A DNA stretch of 33,670 nt from Ministeria vibrans ATCC 50519. Lineage: Eukaryota > Protista > Filasterea. The stretch is from the NCBI GenBank assembly GCA_943704425.1, contig CALSCP010002467.1, positions 1 through 33,670 on the forward strand, written 5' to 3'. Position 1 is the stretch's first letter. Every line of letters starts with the position of its first letter. The translations under genes were made by a program, and so were the position numbers. This document shows, in pieces, positions 2,303 to 30,396 of the stretch. The notes under the pieces are model-generated. The model did no database searches, had not been told where the DNA came from, and saw only the letters and a list, made by a program, of their open reading frames with translations.

Positions 2303-3984
2303 TTATTTCTCAATGCCTCTCCGTATCCGCGTCATGTCAATGCGCACACACACACGTGGATGCCACGAGGGAGCTCTGCTGGCAAAACAAAACCTCTTAA
2401 ACTCGGTAAGCTCGTCGTCGTCGTCATCGTTGTCGTCGTTGTTGTCGTCCTTGTTGTTGTTGTTGTCACAGTCATCGACACACTCGCTAGTATTCTGTTC
2501 AGCACTGATTATCTTTTCATCGCCTTGTGAAGCAATACTTTCTGTGCGCCGAACATTTGCAGTCTCCACAACTGCGATATCGACGAGGGCTGCTGGTGAT
2601 TTACTCAAGTCACGTTGTGAAACTGAGTTTTCAGCGCACTTCTTCTTTTCCTCCGCTGAGTTCGCTTGAGCCACAGAATTTGATGTGCACTCGTCGCTCG
2701 CACACTTCTCTTTTTCTTTTCTTGGCTTTACACCGACCTTCTTTGCCTTTTTTGCCTTCTTACGGGCATGAACCGCATTTCCCGCGGATTTTGTCTTGCT
2801 GCCGCCTTGAATAAATGCGACGAGGCTGTCAAGATCACCTGCACAGGCCGGAGCAGGAGTCGTTTCATTGCAGGTGGATGATGTGCCCGAGCACACCTGC
2901 TTCCGCTCCGTCTGTCGACGAGCGTGCGCCAAACGAAGCTGTTCGCGTATTGAGGGAGTGTTTCGCTGTGTTGGGCAAAGTGGGAAGTCTGTCTGACACG
3001 ACGGAAAGCCCGCAAGCACAACGGGGAGCTGTGCCATCGAGCGTGGCAAGAAATTAATAAGGATGTTGGAGAGGTGCAGTTGCTTGAGAGATTGGAGCTT
3101 TCCCATGGAGCTGGGAAGAGAGACAAGTTGGTTGCAGCTTGCATCGAGAGAAACCAGCGTCGTCAGGTTGCCAGTCGACGCGGGGAGCGATGATAGTGAA
3201 TTTTGAGAGAGCTGCAGCTCTGCAATGGCAGGGAGTTGGCCAAGCGAATCGGGGAGAAGAGTGAGCTGGTTTTCCGCAAGATCAAGGACGGTCAGTGACA
3301 GTAATTGACCCACAGAGTTTGGGAGTGACAGGAGACGGTTGTGGCCGAGAAATAGCTTTGTGAGTGATTTGAGTTGGCCAATGGATTCGGGCAGGAACTC
3401 GAGCTGATTGTGGCAGAGAGTGAGCTCTTGCAACGACGTGAGATTGCCGATAGAGGCAGGCAGAACATCGAGGCAGTTGGTGCAGAGCGACAAGTTTGTG
3501 AGTGTGCTCAACAGGCCAATAGAATCAGGCAAGGCCGTTAGATTGTTGTTGGCGATGTTGAGCACAGCAAGTGATGAGAGCATTCCAATGGAAGGCGGCA
3601 AGCGTCTCAGTCGATTGGACGCGAGAATGAGCTTTCTCAAAGCCGCGAGCTGGCCAATAGAGTCGGGCACTGCAATCAGCTGGTTGTGGCAGAGAGTCAG
3701 CTTCTCCATCGTTTCAAGCTCGCCAATCCACGATGGCAGAGTGACAAGTTCGTTGCGACAGAGACTGAGATCCGAGACTTGCGCGAGAGCGTCCAGTTCA
3801 CATGTGGAAATCGTCATTGGCAACTCTCTCACCTGCTTGTTGATGAGGTGAAGTTGATCTCCTTGGCAATGCGCATGGAGTTCTTCTACACAGCAAAAGG
3901 AACAAAAACGACCCGTGATGATTGTGTAAACAAACAACTAACCCTAACCGAGTGAGCCGTACCAATTGAGGGCGAGCTCGTCAT
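2303..3984 (-). CDS. Leucine-rich repeat protein (about 11 23-aa LRRs) with FAM193-like C-terminal motifs
   Basis: Repeats of LxxLxLxxNxLxxLPxSIGxL. Predicted exon 1 3984-3963 (MTSSPSI), phase-1 intron 3962-3886 (GTACGG...TGTAG), exon 2 3885-2303. Tail has DLDSLVAFIQG, a Lys-rich stretch and DDELTEFKRFC. Confidence 0.85.
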
Positions 3985-17028: not shown

Positions 17029-19103
17029 ATGGTACGCTTTGCTTTCCGTTGAAACAGACCCGTGATGGTTTACTGCACGCCATCTCATGCCTCAACGGTT
17101 TACTGCTCTCCCCCTGTGGCCCTTTTTCATTCATCTTTCTCACATTCTCGGTGCACTCTCCGGCAGGCCCACCACTCCCCCGCCGACCTGCTCCCGCGTA
17201 TCTCTCCACGACGAACGCCGTCGACGTCGTCCGCCTCAAAGGACGGAGGCATGGTGGTGCTGTCGCAGAGTCAGCTTGACACTATTCGTCGGCGCAGTGT
17301 CAACATGTCTAACTCAACGCCAACGCTTCCTCCCGCCTCCCGCTCGCCTTCGTCTTCGCCTCACGACCGCCAGCGACACCTCCAGCAGATTGCTGATGCC
17401 GAAGCGTCCTTGGTGGCGCGATCGGCCGAGCAACAGAGACGCGACGAGGCGATCAGGGCTCGAGCACAGCGTCTATCCATTGATCAGAGCGAGGAGCTGC
17501 GTCGACTGAGCGAGCTTGTCAACCAAGCAAAGGCGTCGAGTGTTGTTGAGCAACAAAAACAGGAAAAGCGTGAAATGGAGTCACGTCAGCGTGACCGAGA
17601 GCGGTTGGAAAGTGCGGAAATTGAGCGACAGAGATTGGCACAACTTGAACAAGTACGCATTATATTATTATGCATCATAATATCAACGCGTCTTCTTCCT
17701 GTGTCTGTTCTTTCTCTTGTTTGTCATTGCAGGAACAATATGAAATAGAACGCAAACGAAACGAACGCGCTGCCATTCGCGACGCACAGCTACAACAGAG
17801 TCAAGAAAAGAAGGACCAACGGTTGTTTCAGAGAGAACTCAATGACGAAGTACAAAAACACCAAAGAGCGGGGGAAAAGACTCTCTACGAAGTGTATATT
17901 TAATATTGATTTGTTGTTTACTTTAGCAATCACGAGCAATGCTAAGAGAATGCGGTACACTACAACAAAAAGTTTCTAAAATTATGTCGCTCAAGTTTGT
18001 TTTGTTTGTTTTTTGTTTGTTTGTTTTTACTTTTGTTGTAGAAGCGCAATTGAAAGCAAACGAACGAGCAATTGCAGCAAAGAAGGAGGAAACCCGACGG
18101 TTTGTGGAGAGCATGCGCAAAGCAGACCAGAGCCGCAAACATTTGTATGAGTCCCGTCGGAGCCTGGTCAGAGAACGATCGTGTGTTTCTTATGATACTA
18201 ATAATGACTGTGATATTATTATTATTTCTATTTCTAATGTAAATAATGATAATAATTATTATTTTATTATTTTATTCTTTGTAGGCACGTAAAGAGGAGA
18301 TGGAGTGTGAGCGAGAGCAGCAGGCGAAGGAGGAACGGCAGAAGTTGATACAGAAACAGAGAGAGTTGAGTGTGCAACGGAATGCACTGCGAGCGGAACG
18401 AGCGTCAAAAGACGTAAGGAATAGATTGATTGGCGAGTCACTTTCATGCGTCTAATTACAATCGTTACGTCATTTTATTTTTAGTTGGTTGCTGTGAGTG
18501 ATGCGGTACGCTTGCGTGAACTTGTGAGTGAGCGGCGGGGGCAGGAGGCAGTAGAGCGGGGGTGGCGCGAGCGGATGGTGCGGGAAGGGGAAGAGCGGGA
18601 GCGAAAGCGGAGAGAGGTTGAGCGGGCGAGCGAAGCACAAAGGCGAGAGAAGGAGCGAGAGAAGGAGCGGCTGCGGGAGAGGGAGGAGCGGGAAGAGCGG
18701 GAGGGTTGGATGCGGGGGGAGCAGATGGAGAGGGAACGGGAGCGGAGGGAGAGGGAGACACGCGAGAGGAAGGAACGCGACCAGAGGGTGTTGGTGGAGC
18801 AGATGGAGGAGATGCGAGTGCGTAGAGCGCAGGAGGCCGAGATGGAGATGAGCCTGCGACAAGAAGCTGAGGAGCATGAAAAACACCGAATGGCTTTGAT
18901 TGAGCAGCGCAAGAACGAAAAGGTAGAAAGATCTTTGTGTACCCTTTTGTTTGTTTTGATTGTTTGTCTATTAGATTGCCGAATTGAAGCAAATGGGAGT
19001 ACCTCAAGAGTACATTCAGGCAGTGGTGCGTCGTTCACAGGAACCTGGGGAGAAGCGTATGTTTTCACGGGCGATTGACAGTGGTTTGCATCGTTGGAAG
19101 TAA
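17029..19103 (+). CDS. Cilia- and flagella-associated coiled-coil protein, CFAP45-like (trichohyalin-plectin homology domain)
   Basis: ATG 17029 followed directly by an intron, then AHHSPAD..VVLSQSQLDTIR..QSEELRRLSELVNQAK..VEQQKQEK; long E/R-rich coiled coil over several exons; C-terminal IAELKQMGVPQEY; stop TAA 19101-19103. Confidence 0.7.
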
Positions 19104-19679: not shown

Positions 19680-20207
19680 GAAATGCCGAATGCGCGCTAC
19701 GCTGTCGATGGGGCGCTGTTGGCCTTCAGCGACACGGACGCTCCACAAGTGACGCTGTTCCAGGCGCACCCGGACGGCTCTGAGCGGGTTGGGCGGGCTC
19801 TTGCGACGTGGCACGCCGACCCCTGGGAGATAGCACTCAGTCCCGATGCCCAGTGGCTCGTGGTTGCCTCAGAGACCCCCCAGGCCGTCGTGTTTTCGCT
19901 GGACGAGTTGACCCCTGTCAGGTCACTCACTGGGCATCTCAGGTGAGAGGGAAACCCCCCCTTTCAATCACATACTTTGACGATGGCCCTTGCTTCTATT
20001 GTGTCTTCGATCCTTAACTGTGCAACGCTTTTTTGTTTGTTTTTTTATTATATTTTGATATTTTATTTTGTGCTGTGACAGTTCTGTTCATTCGGTCCGA
20101 GTGTCCCCCGATGGACTCCGAGTGGTCACTGGGTCGAAAGACACGACCATCAAAGTGTGGGAATTCCACAGTGGAGTGTGCACTCTTACTCTTACTGGTC
20201 ACAGTGG

Positions 20208-20303
<96 letters not shown>

Positions 20304-23300
20304 TATCACTGTGTGTGTGGCTTATTTCCATTTGTGTAGTCGCGTCTGGTCTGTTGATTTCCCACCCAATGGACTCAAACTGGTCAGTGGAAGTGCAGAC
20401 CACTCAATTCGAGTGTGGGACAGTCAATCGGGAGAGTGTCTACTCATTCTGAAGGAACACACAGGGTAAGAGCGACTACGATTTGTGGGTCCAACTGTTC
20501 TCTTTTTTTTGCATTTTAGTACTGTCCGATCAGTGAGATTTTCACCCGATGGAACCAAAATATTAAGTGGCTCTTGGGACAACACAATGAAACTCTGGGA
20601 CAGTCAAACGGGAAAATGCGAAATCACGTTTATCGGACATTCACTGTACGCTTGATTGGATTCAAACGCAACACAAAGAACAGAAACAATTTTTGTAGCT
20701 CGGTCCTTTGTGTGTCATTCTCATTTGATGGACAAACAGTGCTCAGTGGATCATCCGACCACACTATCAAAATATGGTCTGTTGTGACTGGAGAGTGTCT
20801 CAAAACACTTATTGGACACTCAGCGTATGTCACTCTATCACTATTCGAGAACCAATCTCTCATGTGCCTCTTTCTTTTGCAGCCATCTGTGCTCAGCAGT
20901 GTTTTCGCCTGATGGTCATTATGTGATCAGTGGGTCAGAGGACTATACTGTGAAAGTGTGGAATGTGCAAACGGAACAGTGCGAAGAGACATTTGAGGAA
21001 CATTCACAGTGAGAAGAATTAACTGCAGTGTGTAGAAAGAGTGAGTGTGTCTGACCAGTCGGTTTTTAGAATTGTTCGCTCAGTCGCACTGTCTCGAGAC
21101 GGAAGCACTATCTACAGTGGATCTGCTGACAAGACAATCAAAGTGTGGACTCGATCCAAAGGAACCATTCGCAAACGATTCCCACTCCCTTCAAAGTGAG
21201 ACAGTCACTCTTTTTGTGTAACACTCATTCCCGTTGTAGAGTGGAGTCGATTGAGTTCTCTTCGGATGGGAAGACACTAATCGCACATTGCACAGACAAG
21301 ACAGATCACAGATGGCCCATGGGCGAGTTCATCACGTGAGAAGCACACTCCAAATCAGACAAAATGACTCTATTGAACTCCCTTTGGGTGTGTGTCTTTT
21401 TCTTTTTCCTTTTTTTGCAGTGCGCTCACGGACAGCAGTGTGTACCAGAAGGCGTTTCTTGCAGCAGTGCAACGAGGCTCAGTGCAGCCACGCACGATCA
21501 AACTGCTGTGTCTAGGGGCAGTGATGGCTGGGAAGACAACCCTGCTACATGCACTGCGCGGACTGACGCTGCCCACCGACGCAGATCGGTCCATTGCTAC
21601 TCGACTGCAGCGACTGCGTCTGGTCTACCGCGGAGACAAGGGCTTCTTTGAGGCTGTACCGCAGGAGGAGTTTCACCTTGCCAGTCTCATTGGGGGACAG
21701 TCTCATCTTGATGTGTCTTCTGCTGCGGGCGCCTTATCCCCACCAACACATCCATCCACAACCACCACGACACTAGACTCCGGCTCATCGTCAGCTCCAG
21801 CCCCCTCGTCCCGCCCTTCCTCACCACTCCCATCGTCCTTGCCACCTTCCTCCCCACTCCCACCCTCGTCCTCTCCCACTGCCTCAGACACGATGCAGGC
21901 GGTGCACACCCTGCTCGAGACTGAACTGCGCGACGGTCACATTGACCTCGAGACATTCGACTTTGCAGGTCAGTCGTCTTGAGCCAAGTTTTTTTTACTC
22001 TGATCCGTTTCTTTCCTCTCTCTGTATCTCCGTACCTTTTAGGCGAAGAGACGTTTGATTCACTCCCTGCACTCTTCATGGGCTCCGAGTCACTGTACGT
22101 GATTGTCTTTGACCTGTCTGTGATGCGCGACACAGCCCCGGCGGAGCGACAGTACGAGCACATCACCAAGTGGGCGCACATCATTGCCCACCAAGTGCCC
22201 ACTAGCAGCAATGCCTACTTCCGCGTCATTCTCGTCGGCACCCACCTTGACACGTTCCCCGACGAGACGGTGCCGGCCGATCTGCTCACCGTCATCTCCG
22301 ACAAGATCCTGCGTCTGGTGGGCTATCTGCTCGGCAACCATCTGATGCGCCCGACCGATGGCTCAAATATGCCCTTCTTCCAGGTGGGCAGCAGCACCAA
22401 AGTGGGACTGGGCGCACTCACTCAAGCACTGCGCGACTCAGTGCGACCACGCACACTACCACTGGAGTATGTGTGTGTGCAGGATTTGCTGGGTCGCGCG
22501 GCACGCCAGAACGCGATTCCTCTTTTGTCGCCCGTGGCACAGTTGGACACACTCGAGCTCAATCGCGACCCATTGATCACACTGTCGGCCCTGCTGCCTG
22601 ACTTGTCGTCTGTGCGCACGGGTCTTGTACCGTACCTGGAGTCTGCGGCGGACATTGTGGTGTGCCGTGAGGATGTGACGGGGCAGACCCTGTGCGACTC
22701 GGACACGATTGTGTTCAACATTCCACGCCTGATCTCAGCGGTGGAGCTGTTGTGCTCGGTGGTGATGGCACGTTGGGGCCGGGCGACGAGTGCACGCGCA
22801 AAGGAGATGCTGGCCAAAGTCATTGCAGCGGGACACAGCGTCGAGTTCCAACAGACTGAGCGAGTGTTGAAGCGACTAGACTCATCTCTCAATCGTGCGG
22901 AAGAAGGATTTCCTCGCGAGGTGGCGGAGTGGCTCCTGTGGACTGCGGCCAAGACGAGGAGTAACGACCCTGTGCTTGTAGGTGCGGACGTGACGAACAC
23001 TGCGGCATTCATGTCGTGTTTGGCACATCTCAATCTGCTGCATTGTCACGAAGACCGTCTGCTGATGCCGATGTTGTTGCCTGAGACTGCGTCTTTTGCG
23101 ACGAGTTTAACTGCCCCATCGGCGGCGGAGGTGTTCCTGTACCAGATGATTACGACGGCGTCTGGGGACTGGGAGGCGCTTCCCGTGTCACTGGCAACGT
23201 TCCATCTGGTGGTGGTGGCATTGTGGCGAGCGAGTCTGCCCGACAGTCCCATTGAGGCAACACAGCGATGTACCAATGCGATGTCGATGGACGGGTGTGT

Positions 23301-24519
23301 GCCAGTGCGACTGCGACTCAACACGGAGGAGACCTTTATTCGAGTTGAGTTGCTCAAGGACACGACTGCCAAGACAGTCGAGATGACGTGGACACGACTG
23401 ATTGAGCGAGTGTGTGAGTCGACGCGGTCACTGCGGTGGGGCTGGCGTGGATGTGCTGTTGTTGTGCCCGCGCATCCTTTTACGACTGACAAGTCGCGTC
23501 CGCTGTTTGAGCCTGAAAAGATCGCTGCACGCCCGATGCACTACCGTGAAATTGCAACGGTGGAGAGTGAGCTTGCACGGTGGACGGGACAGCCAAGCTG
23601 CAATGCGTCTCTGGAGCAGTGGTGGGTCAAGAAACCTCGTAAGAGAAAAATGCAAGTTCGTTTCTTCCATTGATATTATTGTATTATTTTAGCCACTGGC
23701 ATCTACTCGCATGCGTCCGCCCTGATCATTGGGGTGAGTCAGTTCTGCTCCACGGGCAATCCGGCACTGAGTGCGTACCCTGACCTTCCGGGTGTGGCGC
23801 AGAGTGTGAAGTTGCTGGAGAAGATGTGGAGGGAACGTGAGTTTGACGTGGAGACGGTGGTGGACAAGCAAAAAGGACAGCGAGTGACCAAGACGGAGAT
23901 CGTTGCTGCAGCACGCAAGTTGGCCGAGAAGGCTCAGGAGCGTGCCGGGAAGGATTCGCTCCTGATTGTGCATCTAATTGGTCATGGAGTGGACGACAAC
24001 ACAGGCGGTCTTCTCCTGAGTGACGCCTGGACGTCGTGTGTTGGTCATACCAGTCGCTTTACAGTCCGCTCGCTTGGTGACATCTTGCAAGACGAAGCCG
24101 GCTGGAAAGGCTGCAACATTCTCTTATTCTGCGACTTCTGCAACAGCGGCGCACTAATTCAGCCGGAGGAGGAACTGACGATGGACGAGAGCTTTGCTCC
24201 AGTGCAGCGCTACTCGCGACAGATGATCACAAGCTGCATCAAGCGAGTGAAATCTTACATGACATTCAGTGAGGACAAAACGCAGATGACGAAGCTGCTG
24301 CTACGCGCCCTTGACAATTTGAACCCCTCTGCGTTTCGAGACGGCGATGAAGTGCTGAGTGCGGTTGAGCTGCGTCGTCGTCTGCTGACACTGGACCGCG
24401 AGAAAACGTTTCAGTCTGCGCTGATAGGGCGAATTTGGAACGACTGGAGTAGCGGAACCGCCAACGACGGAGACATCTTTCTGTACAAGTACGGAAGTGG
24501 TGTCCGAAAGGAGCCATGA
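19680..24519 (+). CDS. WD40-repeat / Roc GTPase / COR-like / caspase-like (peptidase C14 fold) multidomain Roco protein, about 1360 aa, at least 11 exons
   Basis: Exons 19680-19942, 20082-20207, 20340-20465, 20520-20645, 20699-20824, 20883-21008, 21070-21195, 21240-21335, 21421-21968, 22043-23638, 23693-24519 join in frame via GT-AG introns. Roc motifs: IKLLCLGAVMAGKTTLL, TFDFAG|E, LYVIVFDLS, ILVGTHLD. Protease motifs: ALIIG, LIVHLIGHG, LLFCDFCNSG. The 5' end may include a further upstream exon. Confidence 0.85.
20212..20298. repeat. Compound (GA)n(TA)n microsatellite in a WD40 intron
   Basis: Directly visible. Confidence 0.95.
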
Positions 24520-24637
24520 GAGTCATTTTCACATGAATAAAATTTAATAATATAATTAACTCATTTCACAAATCACAAATTTCTCCTCTCTCAAAAAAAA
24601 ATACCCCTCCACCTCCCCACTACACCTTACACATACC

Positions 24638-25996
24638 ATGTCAGACACCAACACCAAACTCCGTGATCTCTGGAACTCGATTTCCTGCGGCGAGCTTGTT
24701 CGCGATCAAAACTTCCAACCGATCACTGTGGACTCCAACATGTCGATGCGGGACGTGTGCATTGTAAGATAATCGTTTGTGTGTGTTCCCAGCGCCCCTT
24801 TGAGTCACTCGGCACTTCGATTCAGTCGATGTGGCGGAAGTGCGAGTTTTTGGGGAAGTGCGAGTTTTTGATAAAACGAAGAAAAAAAAAGGTTGAAATC
24901 CCCTTATTAATCATCGCTGTTTCTCCATGGATAGGCACTCAGTACAGCTGGCATTACGTCGGCACCCGTGCTGGACCGTAAAACGAACCAGTTCGTCGGC
25001 CTCATTCAGTACGCAGATATTCTTGAGTTGATTCTCGCGTCGCTTCATATGGCAACCGTGCCCGAATCGCACGTTGCCATTGCCGACATGGTTCAAGTGG
25101 GCGAAGGCCCGCGTGCCACCGCCAAGACAGTTGCCGGTAAGGCTTGTTTCATCTCGATTACAATTTTTTAACTTATCATCATCATAACTCTAATCATTGA
25201 TTATACTTTTGTTGTGTAGAGCTGAGCGGCCGTGATCCCTTCCGCCCTTTCATGGCATCGGCGCCACTGCTTTCAGCGGTGCAGGCTCTGACAGCTCCGG
25301 GTGTGCACCGAGGAGCAGTTCTCGAGGACGAGCCAACGGAGCTCATTGGCATTCTGAGTCAGTCAACCATCCTCAAGAAGACCCTTCCGAAGTTGATCGA
25401 GACAGTGCCCGATCTCCTTGCCAAGACAGTCGCGGAACTCAACTTGGGTACCAAGGATATTATTTCGGTCACGACAGGCATGCAAGTGATCAAGGCAATG
25501 GAGCTTATTCACATGCACAAGATCACCGCAGTCGCCATTGTCGATCCCGTCTCGGGCGCCCTCTTTGGCAACATCAGCGTCTCCGACATTAAGGCCGTCT
25601 TTAAGGCCCGAGGATACGCCCTCCTCAAGGGGTAAAAAAAAAAAAATCCGCAATGTTGTATTCATATTCGTTTTCTTTTAGGTCTTGCGCACAGTTTATC
25701 CGCCATCTCCGTCAGGATGCAGACTCACTTGCCTCCGTTGCCACTGAGAAGGCACGATTCCCCTTCTTCTGTGTCAGCCAAGTAAGACACTGAAACAAAA
25801 AATATTTTACGAATAAATTTTATAATGATTGTCTTATTCTGATCTTTTCGTCTCATAGGATGCGACACTTAAGACAGTCCTTCAAAAACTCGTCACCCTG
25901 CACATCCACCATGTGTTTGTCGCCGACAGCAAGTCCGTTCCCACCGGCTTCATTTCCCTCACTGATGTTCTCCGTGTCCTTAAGCCCACCGACTAA
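24638..25996 (+). CDS. CBS-domain protein (AMPK gamma / Sds23-like, four CBS motifs), multi-exon
   Basis: GITSAPVLDRKTNQFVGLI; PGVHRGAVL..LIGILSQS; HKITAVAIVD..LFGNISVSDIK; LHIHHVFVAD..PTGFISLTDVL; stop TAA 25994-25996. Confidence 0.88.
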
Positions 25997-26830: not shown

Positions 26831-28585
26831 GTGTACCGCTCATACATTGGGACGGGCTATGTCGGGACGATTGTGCCGCCCGTGATCCAGCGCAACATCC
26901 TGGAGAACCCCGGCTGGTACACGCAGTACACGCCGTATCAGCCGGAGGTGGCGCAGGGACGACTGGAGTCGCTACTCAACTTCCAGACCATGATCAGCGA
27001 TCTCACTGGCCTGCCCATGTCCAACGCTTCGCTCCTCGATGAGGCCACGGCGGCTGCTGAAGCCATGGGTATGTGCTTTGAAGCGGCGAAAAAAGGCAAG
27101 GGCATCCCTAAGAATGTCTTCTTTGCCGACGCCAACTGCCACCCTCAGACCCTGGCGCTCATCATGACACGCGCCTCCTCCCTGAACATCCATGTCATCA
27201 TTGCGCCGTGGAAGACATGGAATTTTGAACGGGAGGATGTCAATGGACGTGTGTGCGGCGCCATTGTGCAATACCCCGACACGAACGGCACGGTGCACGA
27301 GTACAGCGCGCTCTCGGAGCAGGTGCACGCCCAGGGCGGCCTTATGGTCGTCGCCGCCGATATCCTTGCCCTCACCATGCTGCGACCTCCCGGGGAGTTT
27401 GGTGCGGACGTGGCGCTAGGCACAACCCAGCGCTTTGGTGTTCCCATGGGTTTTGGCGGCCCACACGCCGCCTACTTCTGCACCACCGAGAAGCTCATCC
27501 GCAAGATGCCCGGCCGTATTGTGGGCATCAGCCAGGATGCACGCGGCGAACCGGGCATCCGTCTGGCTCTTCAGACACGCGAGCAGCACATCCGTCGCGC
27601 CAAGGCCACTAGCAACATTTGCACGGCGCAGGCACTGCTCGCCAACATATCCGTCATGTACGCCATCTACCACGGACCCCACGGCCTCACCGCTATCGCC
27701 AAACACGTGTCTCAGTCCACAGCCGCCCTTGCTGACGCTATCACACAACACACACTCAATACAGTGCTTGCCGGTGACGTCTTTGACACCCTCCGCGTCA
27801 CCCCCAACTCTCACGAGGAGCTCCTTGCCATTGCGGCGCGCGCCGAGTCACTTCACATCAACTTGCGCATCCTCAACGACGGTACCGACGACGTATGCGT
27901 CACCCTCGACGAGACTGTCACCCCTCACGACCTCGCCGACTTGTTCTACGTCTTTGGCGTTGGTGACCGCGAGGGCATGTCCGACCTTCTCGCTGCCATC
28001 CCCACTCGCTCCTCCTTTGACTCCTCCTTTGCTCGCACCAGCCCCTTTCTCACTCACTCCATCTTCAACTCGTGCAGCAGCGAAACAGACATGCTGCGCT
28101 ACATCAAACTTCTCGAGAGCCGCGATCTGTCGCTGTGCCACTCGATGATCCCGCTCGGCTCCTGCACCATGAAGCTCAACGCCACCTCGGAGATGCTCCC
28201 GCTCACCTTCCCCGAGTTTAGTAACATCCACCCATTTGCGCCTCTCTCACAGACCGAGGGCTACCACACACTCTTTCATGAGCTTGAGAAGGATCTCTGC
28301 GAAATCACGGGCTACGACGGCTTCTGTCTGCAGCCCAACAGCGGTGCACAAGGCGAGTACACCGGCCTGCGCGTCATCCGCGCGTACCACGAGGCGCGTG
28401 GCGACAACAACCGCCATGTGTGCCTCATTCCCACCAGTGCACACGGTACCAACCCAGCCAGTGCCCACATGGCAGGGCTCACTGTCGTCGACGTCCAGAC
28501 TGACGAGCACGGCGCAATCGACATGAACGAGCTGCAGGCGCAGGTCTGCACACAAAGACTCACCTCAAAACACATACGCACCACC

Positions 28586-28683
<98 letters not shown>

Positions 28684-30396
28684 NNNNNNNNNNNNNNNNN
28701 NNNNNNNNNNNNNNNNNNNNNNNNNNNNNNNNNNNNNNNNNNNNNNNNNNNNNNNNNNNNNNNNNNNNNNNNNNNNNNNNNNNNNNNNNNNNNNNNNNNN
28801 NCACACACACACAGACACACACACACACACACAGACACATACATACATACATACGTACATACATACATACATACATACATACATACATACATACATACAT
28901 ACACTCACTATACGTTGCATGACCCTCTGTTATAGATTGAGAAGTGGAGCGACTCTCTCGCGTGTGTCATGATCACCTACCCTTCAACATACGGTGTCTT
29001 TGATGAAGGAATTCGCGACATCTGCTCGCTGGTGCACGCACACGGTGGACAAGTGTACCTTGACGGTGCAAACCTTAACGCACAGGTGGGCCTGTGCCGT
29101 CCTGGTGACTATGGCTCTGACGTGAGCCATCTCAACCTCCACAAGACCTTCTGGTATGCACACTCATCTACACAGGCATGTTCATGGTCTGACGCTCTGT
29201 TCGCATGTGTGCGTAGCATTCCTCATGGTGGAGGTGGCCCTGGGATGGGCCCTATTGGCGTGAAGGAACATCTCATTCCCTTCCTCCCGACCCACCCTCT
29301 TGTGCCATTTCTCGGTGGCCCCCAGTCCTTTGGAACCATCTCAGGCGCACCCTGGAGCTCCTCGTCCATTCTTCCAATCAGGTACATTGCTGTTCCTTCC
29401 TATGCACACACATTGCACACGACACACACACACTCAACAACACAATATATACACGCACCACAATACACTATATACCCACACAGAGAGACAAATAAATACT
29501 CACATATACACTATTAAGTTGGGCATATCTGCGTCTGATGGGCTCGAGTGGACTCCGGCGTGCCTCTGAGATTGCCATCCTTAATGCTAACTACATGGCG
29601 GCTCGTCTGCGACCCCACTACCCGATTCTTTTCACCAACCTCAAGGGTTACTGTGCCCATGAGTTTATCATCGATGTCCGCCACTTCCAAAAGACAGCCG
29701 GTGTGGAGGCAGCAGACATTGCAAAGCGACTTCAGGTGAGCACGAGAGAGAGACGGAGACTCAGAGAGAGAATAACAGAGAAGGAGACGCAGAGAAAGCC
29801 ATAGACAATGGACACCTCAATTTGCTTTCTATCTCTCTCTCTTTCTTTCTCTCTCAATGTAGGACTACGGGTTCCATGCGCCCACTATGTCCTGGCCAGT
29901 CACCAACACACTGATGATCGAACCCACTGAGAGCGAAAGCAAAGAAGAAATGGACGTAAGGCAAACATATACCGTCTCTCTCTCTCACTCACCCCCAACA
30001 TCGCACACACACACACTCTCTCTCTCTCTCTCTCTCTATCACTTTGTTTCTTTTTCCCTCCTTTCTCCCTCCTGTTTTTCCCCCCTCCTTAGCGCTACGT
30101 TGAAGCACTGATTAGCATTCGTGAAGAAATTCGCGAGATTGAGGAGAACACGTTTGACCAGAAGAATAACCTTCTCAAGAACGCACCGCACCCACTCGCA
30201 TCTGTTACCGCCTCCGAATGGCCCTACCCGTACTCCCGCGAACGCGCTGCTTATCCCAAGGTACGTCAAGCTGACAGATTATATATGACTGACGGACCAT
30301 TTGTAGGACTGGTTGCGTCGTTCTAAGTTCTGGCCCTCCACTGCCCGCATCAACGATGTCTTTGGCGACCGTCACGTTCAAGCCCGACTCGTCTAA
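26188..30396 (+). CDS. GLDC: Mitochondrial glycine dehydrogenase (decarboxylating), glycine cleavage system P protein
   Basis: Arg/Ser-rich presequence, [67 protein letters not shown] (PLP lysine), [33 protein letters not shown]. Confidence 0.98.
28587..28903. repeat. (CA)n and (TACA)n microsatellites with N gap in a GLDC intron
   Basis: Directly visible; N gap at about 28684-28801. Confidence 0.95.

Follow-up and report, generated by a model that had tools for sequence, protein, structure and literature searches.

Can a single eukaryotic gene encode a sensor, a GTPase switch and a caspase-like protease on one chain, and could its product work as an analogue of NLR receptors? This question is raised by a locus on the forward strand of the window, the whole stretch of 33,670 nucleotides that was analysed. 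Our gene model resolves region 19683-24519 (+) as one intact predicted gene that combines WD40 repeats, a divergent Roc-type GTPase, a region of about 395 residues at the position of a COR domain, and a protease (Table 1). The gene has 11 exons, a coding sequence of 4083 nt (1360 codons) and no stop codon inside any exon; its ten introns are all GT-AG, measure 44-139 nt, and have phase 2 in eight cases and phase 1 in the other two. Searches and structure models were run exon by exon.

Table 1. Features of the WD40-Roc-caspase gene in the window (positions of the whole stretch).
Feature	Position	Strand	Basis
Exon 1: start ATG and first WD40-like blade(s)	19683..19942	+	gene model; L001 alignment
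Exons 2-6: one WD40 repeat per 126-nt phase 2-2 exon	20082..21008	+	Pfam WD40; gene model; L001
Exons 2-6, individually	20082-20207, 20340-20465, 20520-20645, 20699-20824, 20883-21008	+	
Exon 7: 126 nt, WD40 repeat	21070-21195	+	Pfam; gene model; L001
Exon 8: 96 nt, last partial blade	21240-21335	+	gene model; L001
Exon 9: Roc G domain, N-terminal half	21421..21968	+	motifs; Pfam Roc/Arf
Exon 10, first part: Roc C-terminal half	22043..22449	+	THLD; Pfam Roc; PDB matches
Exon 10, remainder: COR-sized region, ~395 residues	22450..23638	+	Foldseek on low-confidence model; dN/dS
Intron 10: 54 nt, phase 1, GTAAGA...TTTAG, in-frame TGA 23671-23673	23639..23692	+	gene model
Exon 11: caspase/metacaspase-like protease; stop TGA 24517-24519	23693..24519	+	Pfam; AF2; Foldseek; dyad
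AATAAA, likely polyadenylation signal, 17 nt past the stop	24536..24541	+	sequence reading

The initial annotation had already proposed a single spliced gene, and this proposal stands, since the gene model is consistent and the positions and phases of the introns are kept in related loci. The three junctions that it named, 21335/21421 (phase 2), 21968/22043 (phase 1) and 23638/23693 (phase 1), are real GT-AG pairs, and the short phase-1 intron placed between the last two exons is present as claimed. The extent it gave was correct at its end; its start has been moved from 19680 to the ATG at 19683. The neighbouring genes, one ending upstream at 19078 and the other starting downstream at 24638, are ordinary. 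An E/R-rich ORF at 18485-19078 was considered as a source of additional N-terminal exons and rejected, because that gene terminates independently, its spliced last exon being closed by a stop at 19078, and because L001, a related metagenome locus, has a Met at the position homologous to the start of exon 1.

The N-terminus is predicted, on solid grounds, to be a WD40 beta-propeller of 8-9 blades. Exons 2-7 are each exactly 126 nt long with phase 2-2, and all seven exon pieces tested from them scored 32-46 bits against Pfam WD40 (cut-off 27 bits), with E values of 1e-8 to 7e-12 for exons 2-6; the WD40 assignment made initially is thus borne out. Exons 2-6 have positional orthologs in L001 with 68-90% identity, and no sign of WD40 exon shuffling between the window and L001 was seen. 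In the same comparison, exons 2-8 form the best-conserved part of the protein (76% amino-acid identity, dN/dS 0.31). Exon 1, which aligns from its Met with the Met-initiated stretch 291-539 of L001, is the most diverged exon (~33-35% identity, dN/dS 0.61). Rapid evolution of the sensor repeats was therefore not found in exons 2-8, exon 1 alone being diverged relative to L001, and such conservation makes exons 2-8 a poor fit to a fast-evolving pathogen sensor.

At the other end of the protein, the evidence is solid for a predicted clan-CD cysteine protease that is metacaspase-like and whose His/Cys dyad is intact. Exon 11 matches Pfam Peptidase_C14 (PF00656) with 39.8 bits and an E value of 5.5e-10 (cut-off 21.4), and the relatives P0005, P0008, P0009 and L006 also pass this cut-off. 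Its AF2 model is confident (pLDDT 77.8, pTM 0.85), and Foldseek relates it to caspase-9, the top structural match, and to caspase-3, MALT1, metacaspase-4 and GSU0716 (prob 1.0, TM about 0.55), in agreement with the caspase fold proposed for this domain. The codons that had been named as catalytic, His 23983-23985 and Cys 24139-24141, were correctly placed, and both residues are invariant in all nine family sequences. The dyad aligns with the HG and CxSG positions of AtMC9, whose crystal construct has Ala at the Cys position, and GHG and DxCxSG are metacaspase-type motifs.

Between these two domains lies a G domain that the combined motif and profile evidence supports as a divergent, putative Roc-type GTPase whose G1, G3 and G4 motifs are all intact. 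The P-loop (G1) GAVMAGKT occupies 21515-21538, with its Lys codon at 21533-21535; the G3 motif DFAG begins at 21959, its Gly being split across an intron; and the G4 motif THLD, shared with LRRK2, is found at 22240-22251. These three motifs are kept in L001, L002, L004 and L006. Exon 9, which also contains a variable, disordered Ser/Pro/Thr-rich insert, matches Pfam Roc (E 0.055) and Arf (E 0.025), and the first part of exon 10 matches Roc with E 0.063. Scored exon by exon, the two halves reach 14.1 and 14.0 bits and align colinearly with Pfam Roc positions 1-35 and 65-119. No family member attains the curated Roc (PF08477) cut-off of 27 bits, the window having been scored exon-wise; the best score comes from the uninterrupted ORF of the paralog L006 (25.6 bits, E 1.5e-5). 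In the PDB, LRRK2 Roc accounts for all of the best sequence matches to the first part of exon 10 (E 0.08-0.6), with VGTHLD as the aligned motif. Taken together, the motifs, the colinear halves, the LRRK2 matches and the L006 score uphold the Roc assignment of the initial annotation. No exon has a Pfam match to a NACHT or NB-ARC ATPase module, and the NTPase of the window protein is a Ras-like G domain.

The region that follows has the size and position of a COR domain and is well conserved within the family (dN/dS 0.26). Searches for COR gave no Pfam match in any member of the family, even at E values as high as 10, and no PDB sequence match by phmmer, profile or COR-only profile searches, and an hhalign comparison of the core profile with P0138 gave no COR signal. 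A low-confidence model (pLDDT 48.6), with a helix-strand pattern and then a beta-rich C-terminal part, points to a relationship with LRRK1, LRRK2 and CtRoco COR: among 350,542 chains, the best Foldseek matches were LRRK1 (E 5.4e-4), LRRK2, CtRoco COR 3dpt (prob 0.54) and RocCOR 3dpu. This Foldseek result is the one support for the COR domain that had been proposed here. The middle region might not be a COR domain at all, in which case a WD40-small GTPase-novel domain-caspase protein would merely resemble a Roco and would switch without COR dimerisation. We regard this as rather unlikely: the absence of sequence matches and the low confidence of the model agree with it, as does the outcome of running phmmer exhaustively against 1.84 billion representative proteins, with 4 relatives and no known Roco, but the identity of the best structural matches, the size and position of the region, its succession of secondary structures and the LRRK2 form of G4 argue against it.

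The family is small, and its relatives are purely environmental. As to lineage, the GcvP exon reaches 60% identity at most, with matches in Mucoromycota fungi and in opisthokont and colponemid transcriptomes, and the contig is neither human nor similar to human DNA. L001 matches the window gene exon for exon: all 11 are present, in unchanged order and with identical phases, and its introns differ in length. In L001-L004 and L006, the caspase exon is immediately preceded by a whole Roc-COR-like exon 10, and L006 has in addition an upstream WD40 exon; in L005 and L008, only the last 22-86 residues of exon 10 are seen ahead of the caspase exon. One metagenome holds several diverged copies (L001, L004, L006 and L008), and in the family the protease diverges fast (45-56% identity). 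Scans of metagenome contigs with core and caspase profiles and one scan of genome contigs revealed no further members, and no sequence relative appeared among the bacterial genomes in the genome contig scan. The initial annotation had envisaged paralogs with swapped effectors, and none was found: all core-exon relatives that extend far enough carry the same caspase exon, in a small sample in which most loci were reached via that exon. Compared with L001, dN/dS is 0.26-0.32 across the parts and higher in exon 1, so the sequence comparison indicates that purifying selection is acting on all parts of the predicted protein, at a dN/dS of about 0.3.

The joining of exons 10 and 11 allows two interpretations. 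As the length of intron 10 is a multiple of 3, a point that the initial annotation had missed, both exons share a frame, interrupted by a single TGA, and in one relative, P0005, the homologous stretch is read through without a stop. In L001-L004, the homologous phase-1 intron measures 44-68 nt, is not a multiple of 3, and leaves the flanking exons in different frames. Splicing is therefore the conserved way of joining these exons, and read-through across 23639-23692 was rejected as a general mechanism.

Several known systems share parts of this architecture. Roc-COR proteins that end in a caspase are already on record from bacteria, where they count as a predicted conflict system (PMC8195603). 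They fall within a set of LRR-AP-GTPase(Roc)-COR-effector proteins whose effectors include caspase, TIR and trypsin and which are predicted to counter invaders (Kaur, Iyer, Burroughs, Aravind 2021, PMC8195603). The window gene resembles them in its order of repeat sensor, Roc, COR position and C-terminal effector, in its caspase-fold effector and in having multiple paralogs per organism. It differs in being eukaryotic and intron-rich, in carrying a WD40 propeller in place of LRRs, in giving no COR signal by sequence, in the single effector of all paralogs seen, and in sensor repeats that are mostly not fast-evolving. With LRRK1/LRRK2, DAPK1 and CtRoco it shares the Roc motifs, including the LRRK2-type THLD, and it is the LRRK and CtRoco proteins that its GTPase-middle region matches best in the PDB, by sequence and by structure. 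The similarity to characterised Roco proteins is nevertheless sub-threshold and lacks a COR signature; the WD40 repeats of LRRK proteins are C-terminal, whereas those of the window gene are N-terminal, and the output of these proteins is a kinase or is absent, where the window gene has a protease.

Peptidases of the IPR009003 type, which we take to be the trypsin-like PA clan, bring a further group into the comparison. A C-terminal peptidase has been reported for ROCOs of brown algae and of further SAR eukaryotes (PMC11378527). The brown-algal and SAR candidate immune receptors are, like the window gene, eukaryotic Roco-type genes with one symmetric phase-2 exon per sensor repeat, a 72-nt LRR there and a 126-nt WD40 here, and their group 3 also ends in a peptidase; unlike the window gene, they use LRRs as the sensor, and their peptidase is IPR009003 and not caspase-like (PMC3341825, PMC11378527). 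APAF1-caspase-9 and NACHT-WD40 systems likewise combine sensor repeats with an NTPase switch and an effector of caspase fold. The window protein has no STAND ATPase, carries its effector in the same chain instead of recruiting it, and has metacaspase-type motifs; it is an analogue, not a member, of the apoptosome/NLR/STAND systems. The novelty claimed initially holds insofar as no description of a eukaryotic WD40-Roc-COR-caspase protein was found in the literature, and is reduced by the related architectures known from bacteria (PMC8195603) and SAR (PMC11378527). The window gene is the eukaryotic counterpart of GTPase-switched sensor-switch-protease proteins, which until now have been predicted mainly for bacteria.

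In the mechanism proposed here, the WD40 propeller would bind a ligand or partner, and binding would alter the nucleotide state of Roc. The COR-like region would respond by altering the dimer or oligomer state or by releasing autoinhibition, and the C-terminal protease, thereby switched on, would cleave targets in defence, regulated death or signalling. We infer a function as a GTPase-switched protease in one of these three settings, and a sensor-switch-effector mechanism of the NLR-analogue kind can reasonably be inferred by analogy. It is well established that induced proximity does not generally activate metacaspases, which makes the dimerisation step weaker than it is for caspase-9.

The fusion may also be real and serve ordinary cell regulation instead of immunity or death, with the protease acting as a signalling or processing enzyme or as a scaffold, comparable to the MALT1 paracaspase and housekeeping metacaspases. 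Conserved WD40 repeats would suit the binding of a conserved endogenous partner, MALT1 ranks with the top structural matches, all paralogs found have the same effector, and the neighbouring genes are ordinary. Against this stand the several diverged copies in one metagenome and the fast divergence visible in the protease, both typical of conflict genes, and a layout that agrees with predicted conflict systems (PMC8195603); we judge a purely regulatory role to be somewhat improbable. A further reading is that the apparent splicing is coincidental, the locus being either a pseudogene in decay or a row of two or three distinct genes for WD40, GTPase and protease. It is suggested by the TGA that lies in frame between exon 10 and exon 11 and by the ATG that happens to open the L001 protease exon, and is highly improbable given ten frame-preserving GT-AG junctions with phases kept across loci, pieces just 44-139 nt apart, homology that runs on upstream past any start codon, both in the window and at other loci, dN/dS about 0.3 everywhere, and the single ORF that contains the upstream region and the protease in P0138.

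One intact, selected gene with a GTPase-switched protease mechanism is thus the explanation that we consider probable overall. More tentatively, and with considerable doubt, the gene may represent a multigene family, small and diverging fast, whose single-chain WD40-Roc-COR-caspase proteins serve a eukaryotic lineage as receptors for innate immunity or self-destruction, a G-protein-based analogue of the apoptosome and NLRs with a built-in protease, a Roc-COR core beyond sequence recognition, and modular 126-nt phase-2 WD40 exons that would allow repeats to be gained, lost or skipped.

The family, for which 1.84 billion representative proteins yielded only 4 relatives by sequence, may illustrate how far a Roc-COR core can diverge. 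If the proposed mechanism is true, the Roco GTPases of eukaryotes would include NLR-like switches for a caspase-fold protease built into the same chain, a use previously predicted only for bacteria and hinted at by the ROCO-peptidase genes of algae. Furthermore, the protein would offer a compact one-chain system for the control of a non-kinase output by the Roc-COR nucleotide cycle, which bears on the mechanism of LRRK2.

The plus-strand ORF fragments between 19.6 and 24.5 kb of the window join into a predicted gene of 11 exons, with a CDS of 4083 nt (1360 codons) and no stop within any of the 11. The ten introns range from 44 to 139 nt and all have GT-AG ends; the first eight are in phase 2 and the last two in phase 1. 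The three junctions named in the initial annotation match this model exactly, as do the positions it gave for the His (23983-23985) and Cys (24139-24141) codons of the protease; the spliced chain that it had observed is confirmed, while its interpretation as a sensor, switch and effector in one receptor is only partly supported. Intron 10 (23639-23692) measures 54 nt, a multiple of three, leaving exons 10 and 11 in a common frame with a single in-frame TGA (23671-23673) between them, a detail that the initial annotation had overlooked. Intron 2 (20208-20339) is mostly repeat sequence, a (GA)n run and then a (TA)n microsatellite; its homologue in the related environmental contig L001 has only 60 nt.

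Coordinates of the predicted gene, its Roc motifs and adjoining features
Feature	Position	Strand	Remark
Coiled-coil protein gene	17062-19078	+	Glu/Arg-rich, multi-exon; upstream bound, ends 600 nt upstream
Exon 1	19683-19942	+	gene model
Exon 2	20082-20207	+	gene model
Exon 3	20340-20465	+	gene model
Exon 4	20520-20645	+	gene model
Exon 5	20699-20824	+	gene model
Exon 6	20883-21008	+	gene model
Exon 7	21070-21195	+	gene model
Exon 8	21240-21335	+	gene model
Exon 9	21421-21968	+	gene model
P-loop GAVMAGKT	21515-21538	+	Roc motif
Exon 10	22043-23638	+	gene model
THLD	22240-22251	+	Roc motif; form found in LRRK2
Exon 11	23693-24519	+	gene model
AATAAA	24536-24541	+	3' of the stop

Short GT-AG introns and microsatellites identify the contig, which is not human, as eukaryotic, and the neighbouring genes are ordinary eukaryotic ones, encoding an fn3-EGF membrane protein, an LRR protein, a ZIP transporter, and Fes1-like, G-patch and CBS proteins. 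The CBS-domain gene, starting at 24638, bounds the Roco-like gene downstream; the upstream coiled-coil protein has no Pfam match. A large minus-strand ORF (2303-3937) is not a second Roco gene, as no Roc domain was detected in it; its product is an LRR protein (LRR_8, E 3e-32), which also matches FAM193_C weakly and has an acidic low-complexity tail. The glycine dehydrogenase (GcvP) gene at 26831-29517 (+), whose product is at most 60% identical to named sequences, is broken near 28.6-28.8 kb by a (CA)n-type repeat and an N run (assembly gap).

Whether these exons form one gene was judged from related loci. Of 1.84 billion representative proteins searched exhaustively with phmmer, only four matched exon 10; the protease exon gave 7, then 13 matches, all from environmental assemblies. 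Eight contigs (L001-L008) were compared, seven from the ENA 'SCHR19-1' metagenomes and one from Logan. L001 has the full set of 11 exons in unchanged order, with frame-preserving GT-AG introns at 10/10 junctions, identical in phase and different in length. In L001-L004 the intron between exon 10 and the protease exon is in phase 1 in all four cases and is 44-68 nt long, not a multiple of three; the two exons lie in different frames and so are joined only by splicing. The close relative P0005 (JGI sample 3300045300) reads through an 18-codon equivalent of intron 10 without a stop, its flanks near-identical to the window and the intron part diverged, so that intron retention there would still yield a fused protein. 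L006, a more distant paralog, runs from a WD40 exon through a 768-codon ORF (Roc and middle region) to a protease ORF. The divergent member P0138 (L007, 113-1360) joins a 280-residue upstream region to the protease in one ORF; the colinear resemblance of this region to the end of exon 10 is weak (E 0.058) and hhalign was negative; the region may be a variant middle domain.

Each domain assignment is based either on an individual exon or on an ORF that is naturally uninterrupted in a relative, and the WD40, Roc and caspase-fold assignments of the initial annotation were all supported. With a WD40 cut-off of 27 bits, seven pieces from exons 2-7 reach 32-46. These six exons (within 20082-21195) are exactly 126 nt, phase 2-2, with one repeat each and an identical intron position in every repeat, so that the reading frame would survive the duplication, loss or skipping of any of them. 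Each WD40 exon of L001 best matches its positional counterpart in the window; being positional orthologs, they give no sign of recent shuffling. The Roc domain retains GAVMAGKT, DFAG (its Gly split by intron 9) and THLD. Its exon halves align colinearly with Pfam Roc positions 1-35 and 65-119, each at E about 0.06, and the significant-looking PDB sequence matches are all LRRK2 Roc (E 0.08-0.6); in L006, where the ORF is uninterrupted, the score rises to 25.6 bits (E 1.5e-5), just below the cut-off of 27. Between the P-loop half and DFAG lies a Ser/Pro/Thr-rich low-complexity insert (21700-21900), present in all relatives and variable in length and sequence.

Exon 11 as a whole matches Peptidase_C14 at 39.8 bits (cut-off 21.4, E 5.5e-10). 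Its AF2 model, from a nine-sequence alignment, has pLDDT 77.8 and pTM 0.85, and Foldseek matches it at probability 1.0 to caspase-9, caspase-3, MALT1, metacaspase-4 and bacterial GSU0716; among PDB sequences, Arabidopsis metacaspase-9 and -4 come nearest. The catalytic His and Cys are invariant in 9/9 sequences, within the motifs HLIGHG and DFCNSG, which we take to be of metacaspase type.

The COR domain proposed for the middle region was found by no sequence method. Position and size (about 395 residues) are right for COR, and the AF2 model of exon 10, although poor (pLDDT 48.6), has as its best Foldseek matches, out of 350,542 chains, LRRK1 (E 5.4e-4, prob 0.94), several LRRK2 entries, the CtRoco COR domain (3dpt) and RocCOR (3dpu). 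We treat these matches of a low-confidence model as a lead, and name the region COR-like.

Between the window and L001, dN/dS is 0.31 for WD40 exons 2-8, 0.26 for exon 9, 0.26 for exon 10 and 0.32 for exon 11, with dS of about 0.5-1.2, lower in the WD40 exons (about 0.5) than elsewhere in the gene (about 1). These values point to purifying selection on every part and count against a pseudogene. Conservation is highest in exons 2-8 (76% identity), whereas exon 1 (19683-19942 vs L001 291-539) has only 35% amino-acid identity, against 63-85% for the other WD40 exons, and a dN/dS of 0.61.

The chain is intact and under selection, running from sensor-type repeats through a G domain and a middle domain to a protease with its catalytic residues present. 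In the proposed mechanism, the propeller would bind a ligand or partner and alter the nucleotide state of Roc, and the middle region would pass this on to the protease, activating it either by altering the oligomeric state or by relieving autoinhibition. An immune-receptor role is favoured by two findings: a single metagenome has four or more diverged copies (L001, L004, L006, L008), and the Roc, COR-like and protease parts diverge fast. It is tempered by the conservation of WD40 exons 2-8, only exon 1 having diverged, and by the effector, which is the same in all relatives found.

Bacterial LRR-AP-GTPase-COR proteins have at least 24 alternative C-terminal domains, including caspase, TIR and trypsin, and are predicted counter-invader systems (Kaur et al. 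2021, PMC8195603). Brown-algal ROCOs encode one LRR per 72-nt phase-2 exon, which the 126-nt phase 2-2 WD40 exons parallel, and a C-terminal peptidase occurs in one brown-algal group and in other SAR ROCOs (PMC11378527; PMC3341825). A Roco review (PMC6337361) makes no mention of a protease output, and our literature search found no paper combining a metacaspase with Roc. Given the bacterial and algal/SAR precedents, the logic and the domain pair were already known; the novelty lies in a eukaryotic version, fronted by WD40 repeats and ended by a caspase-like protease, whose core has diverged beyond recognition.
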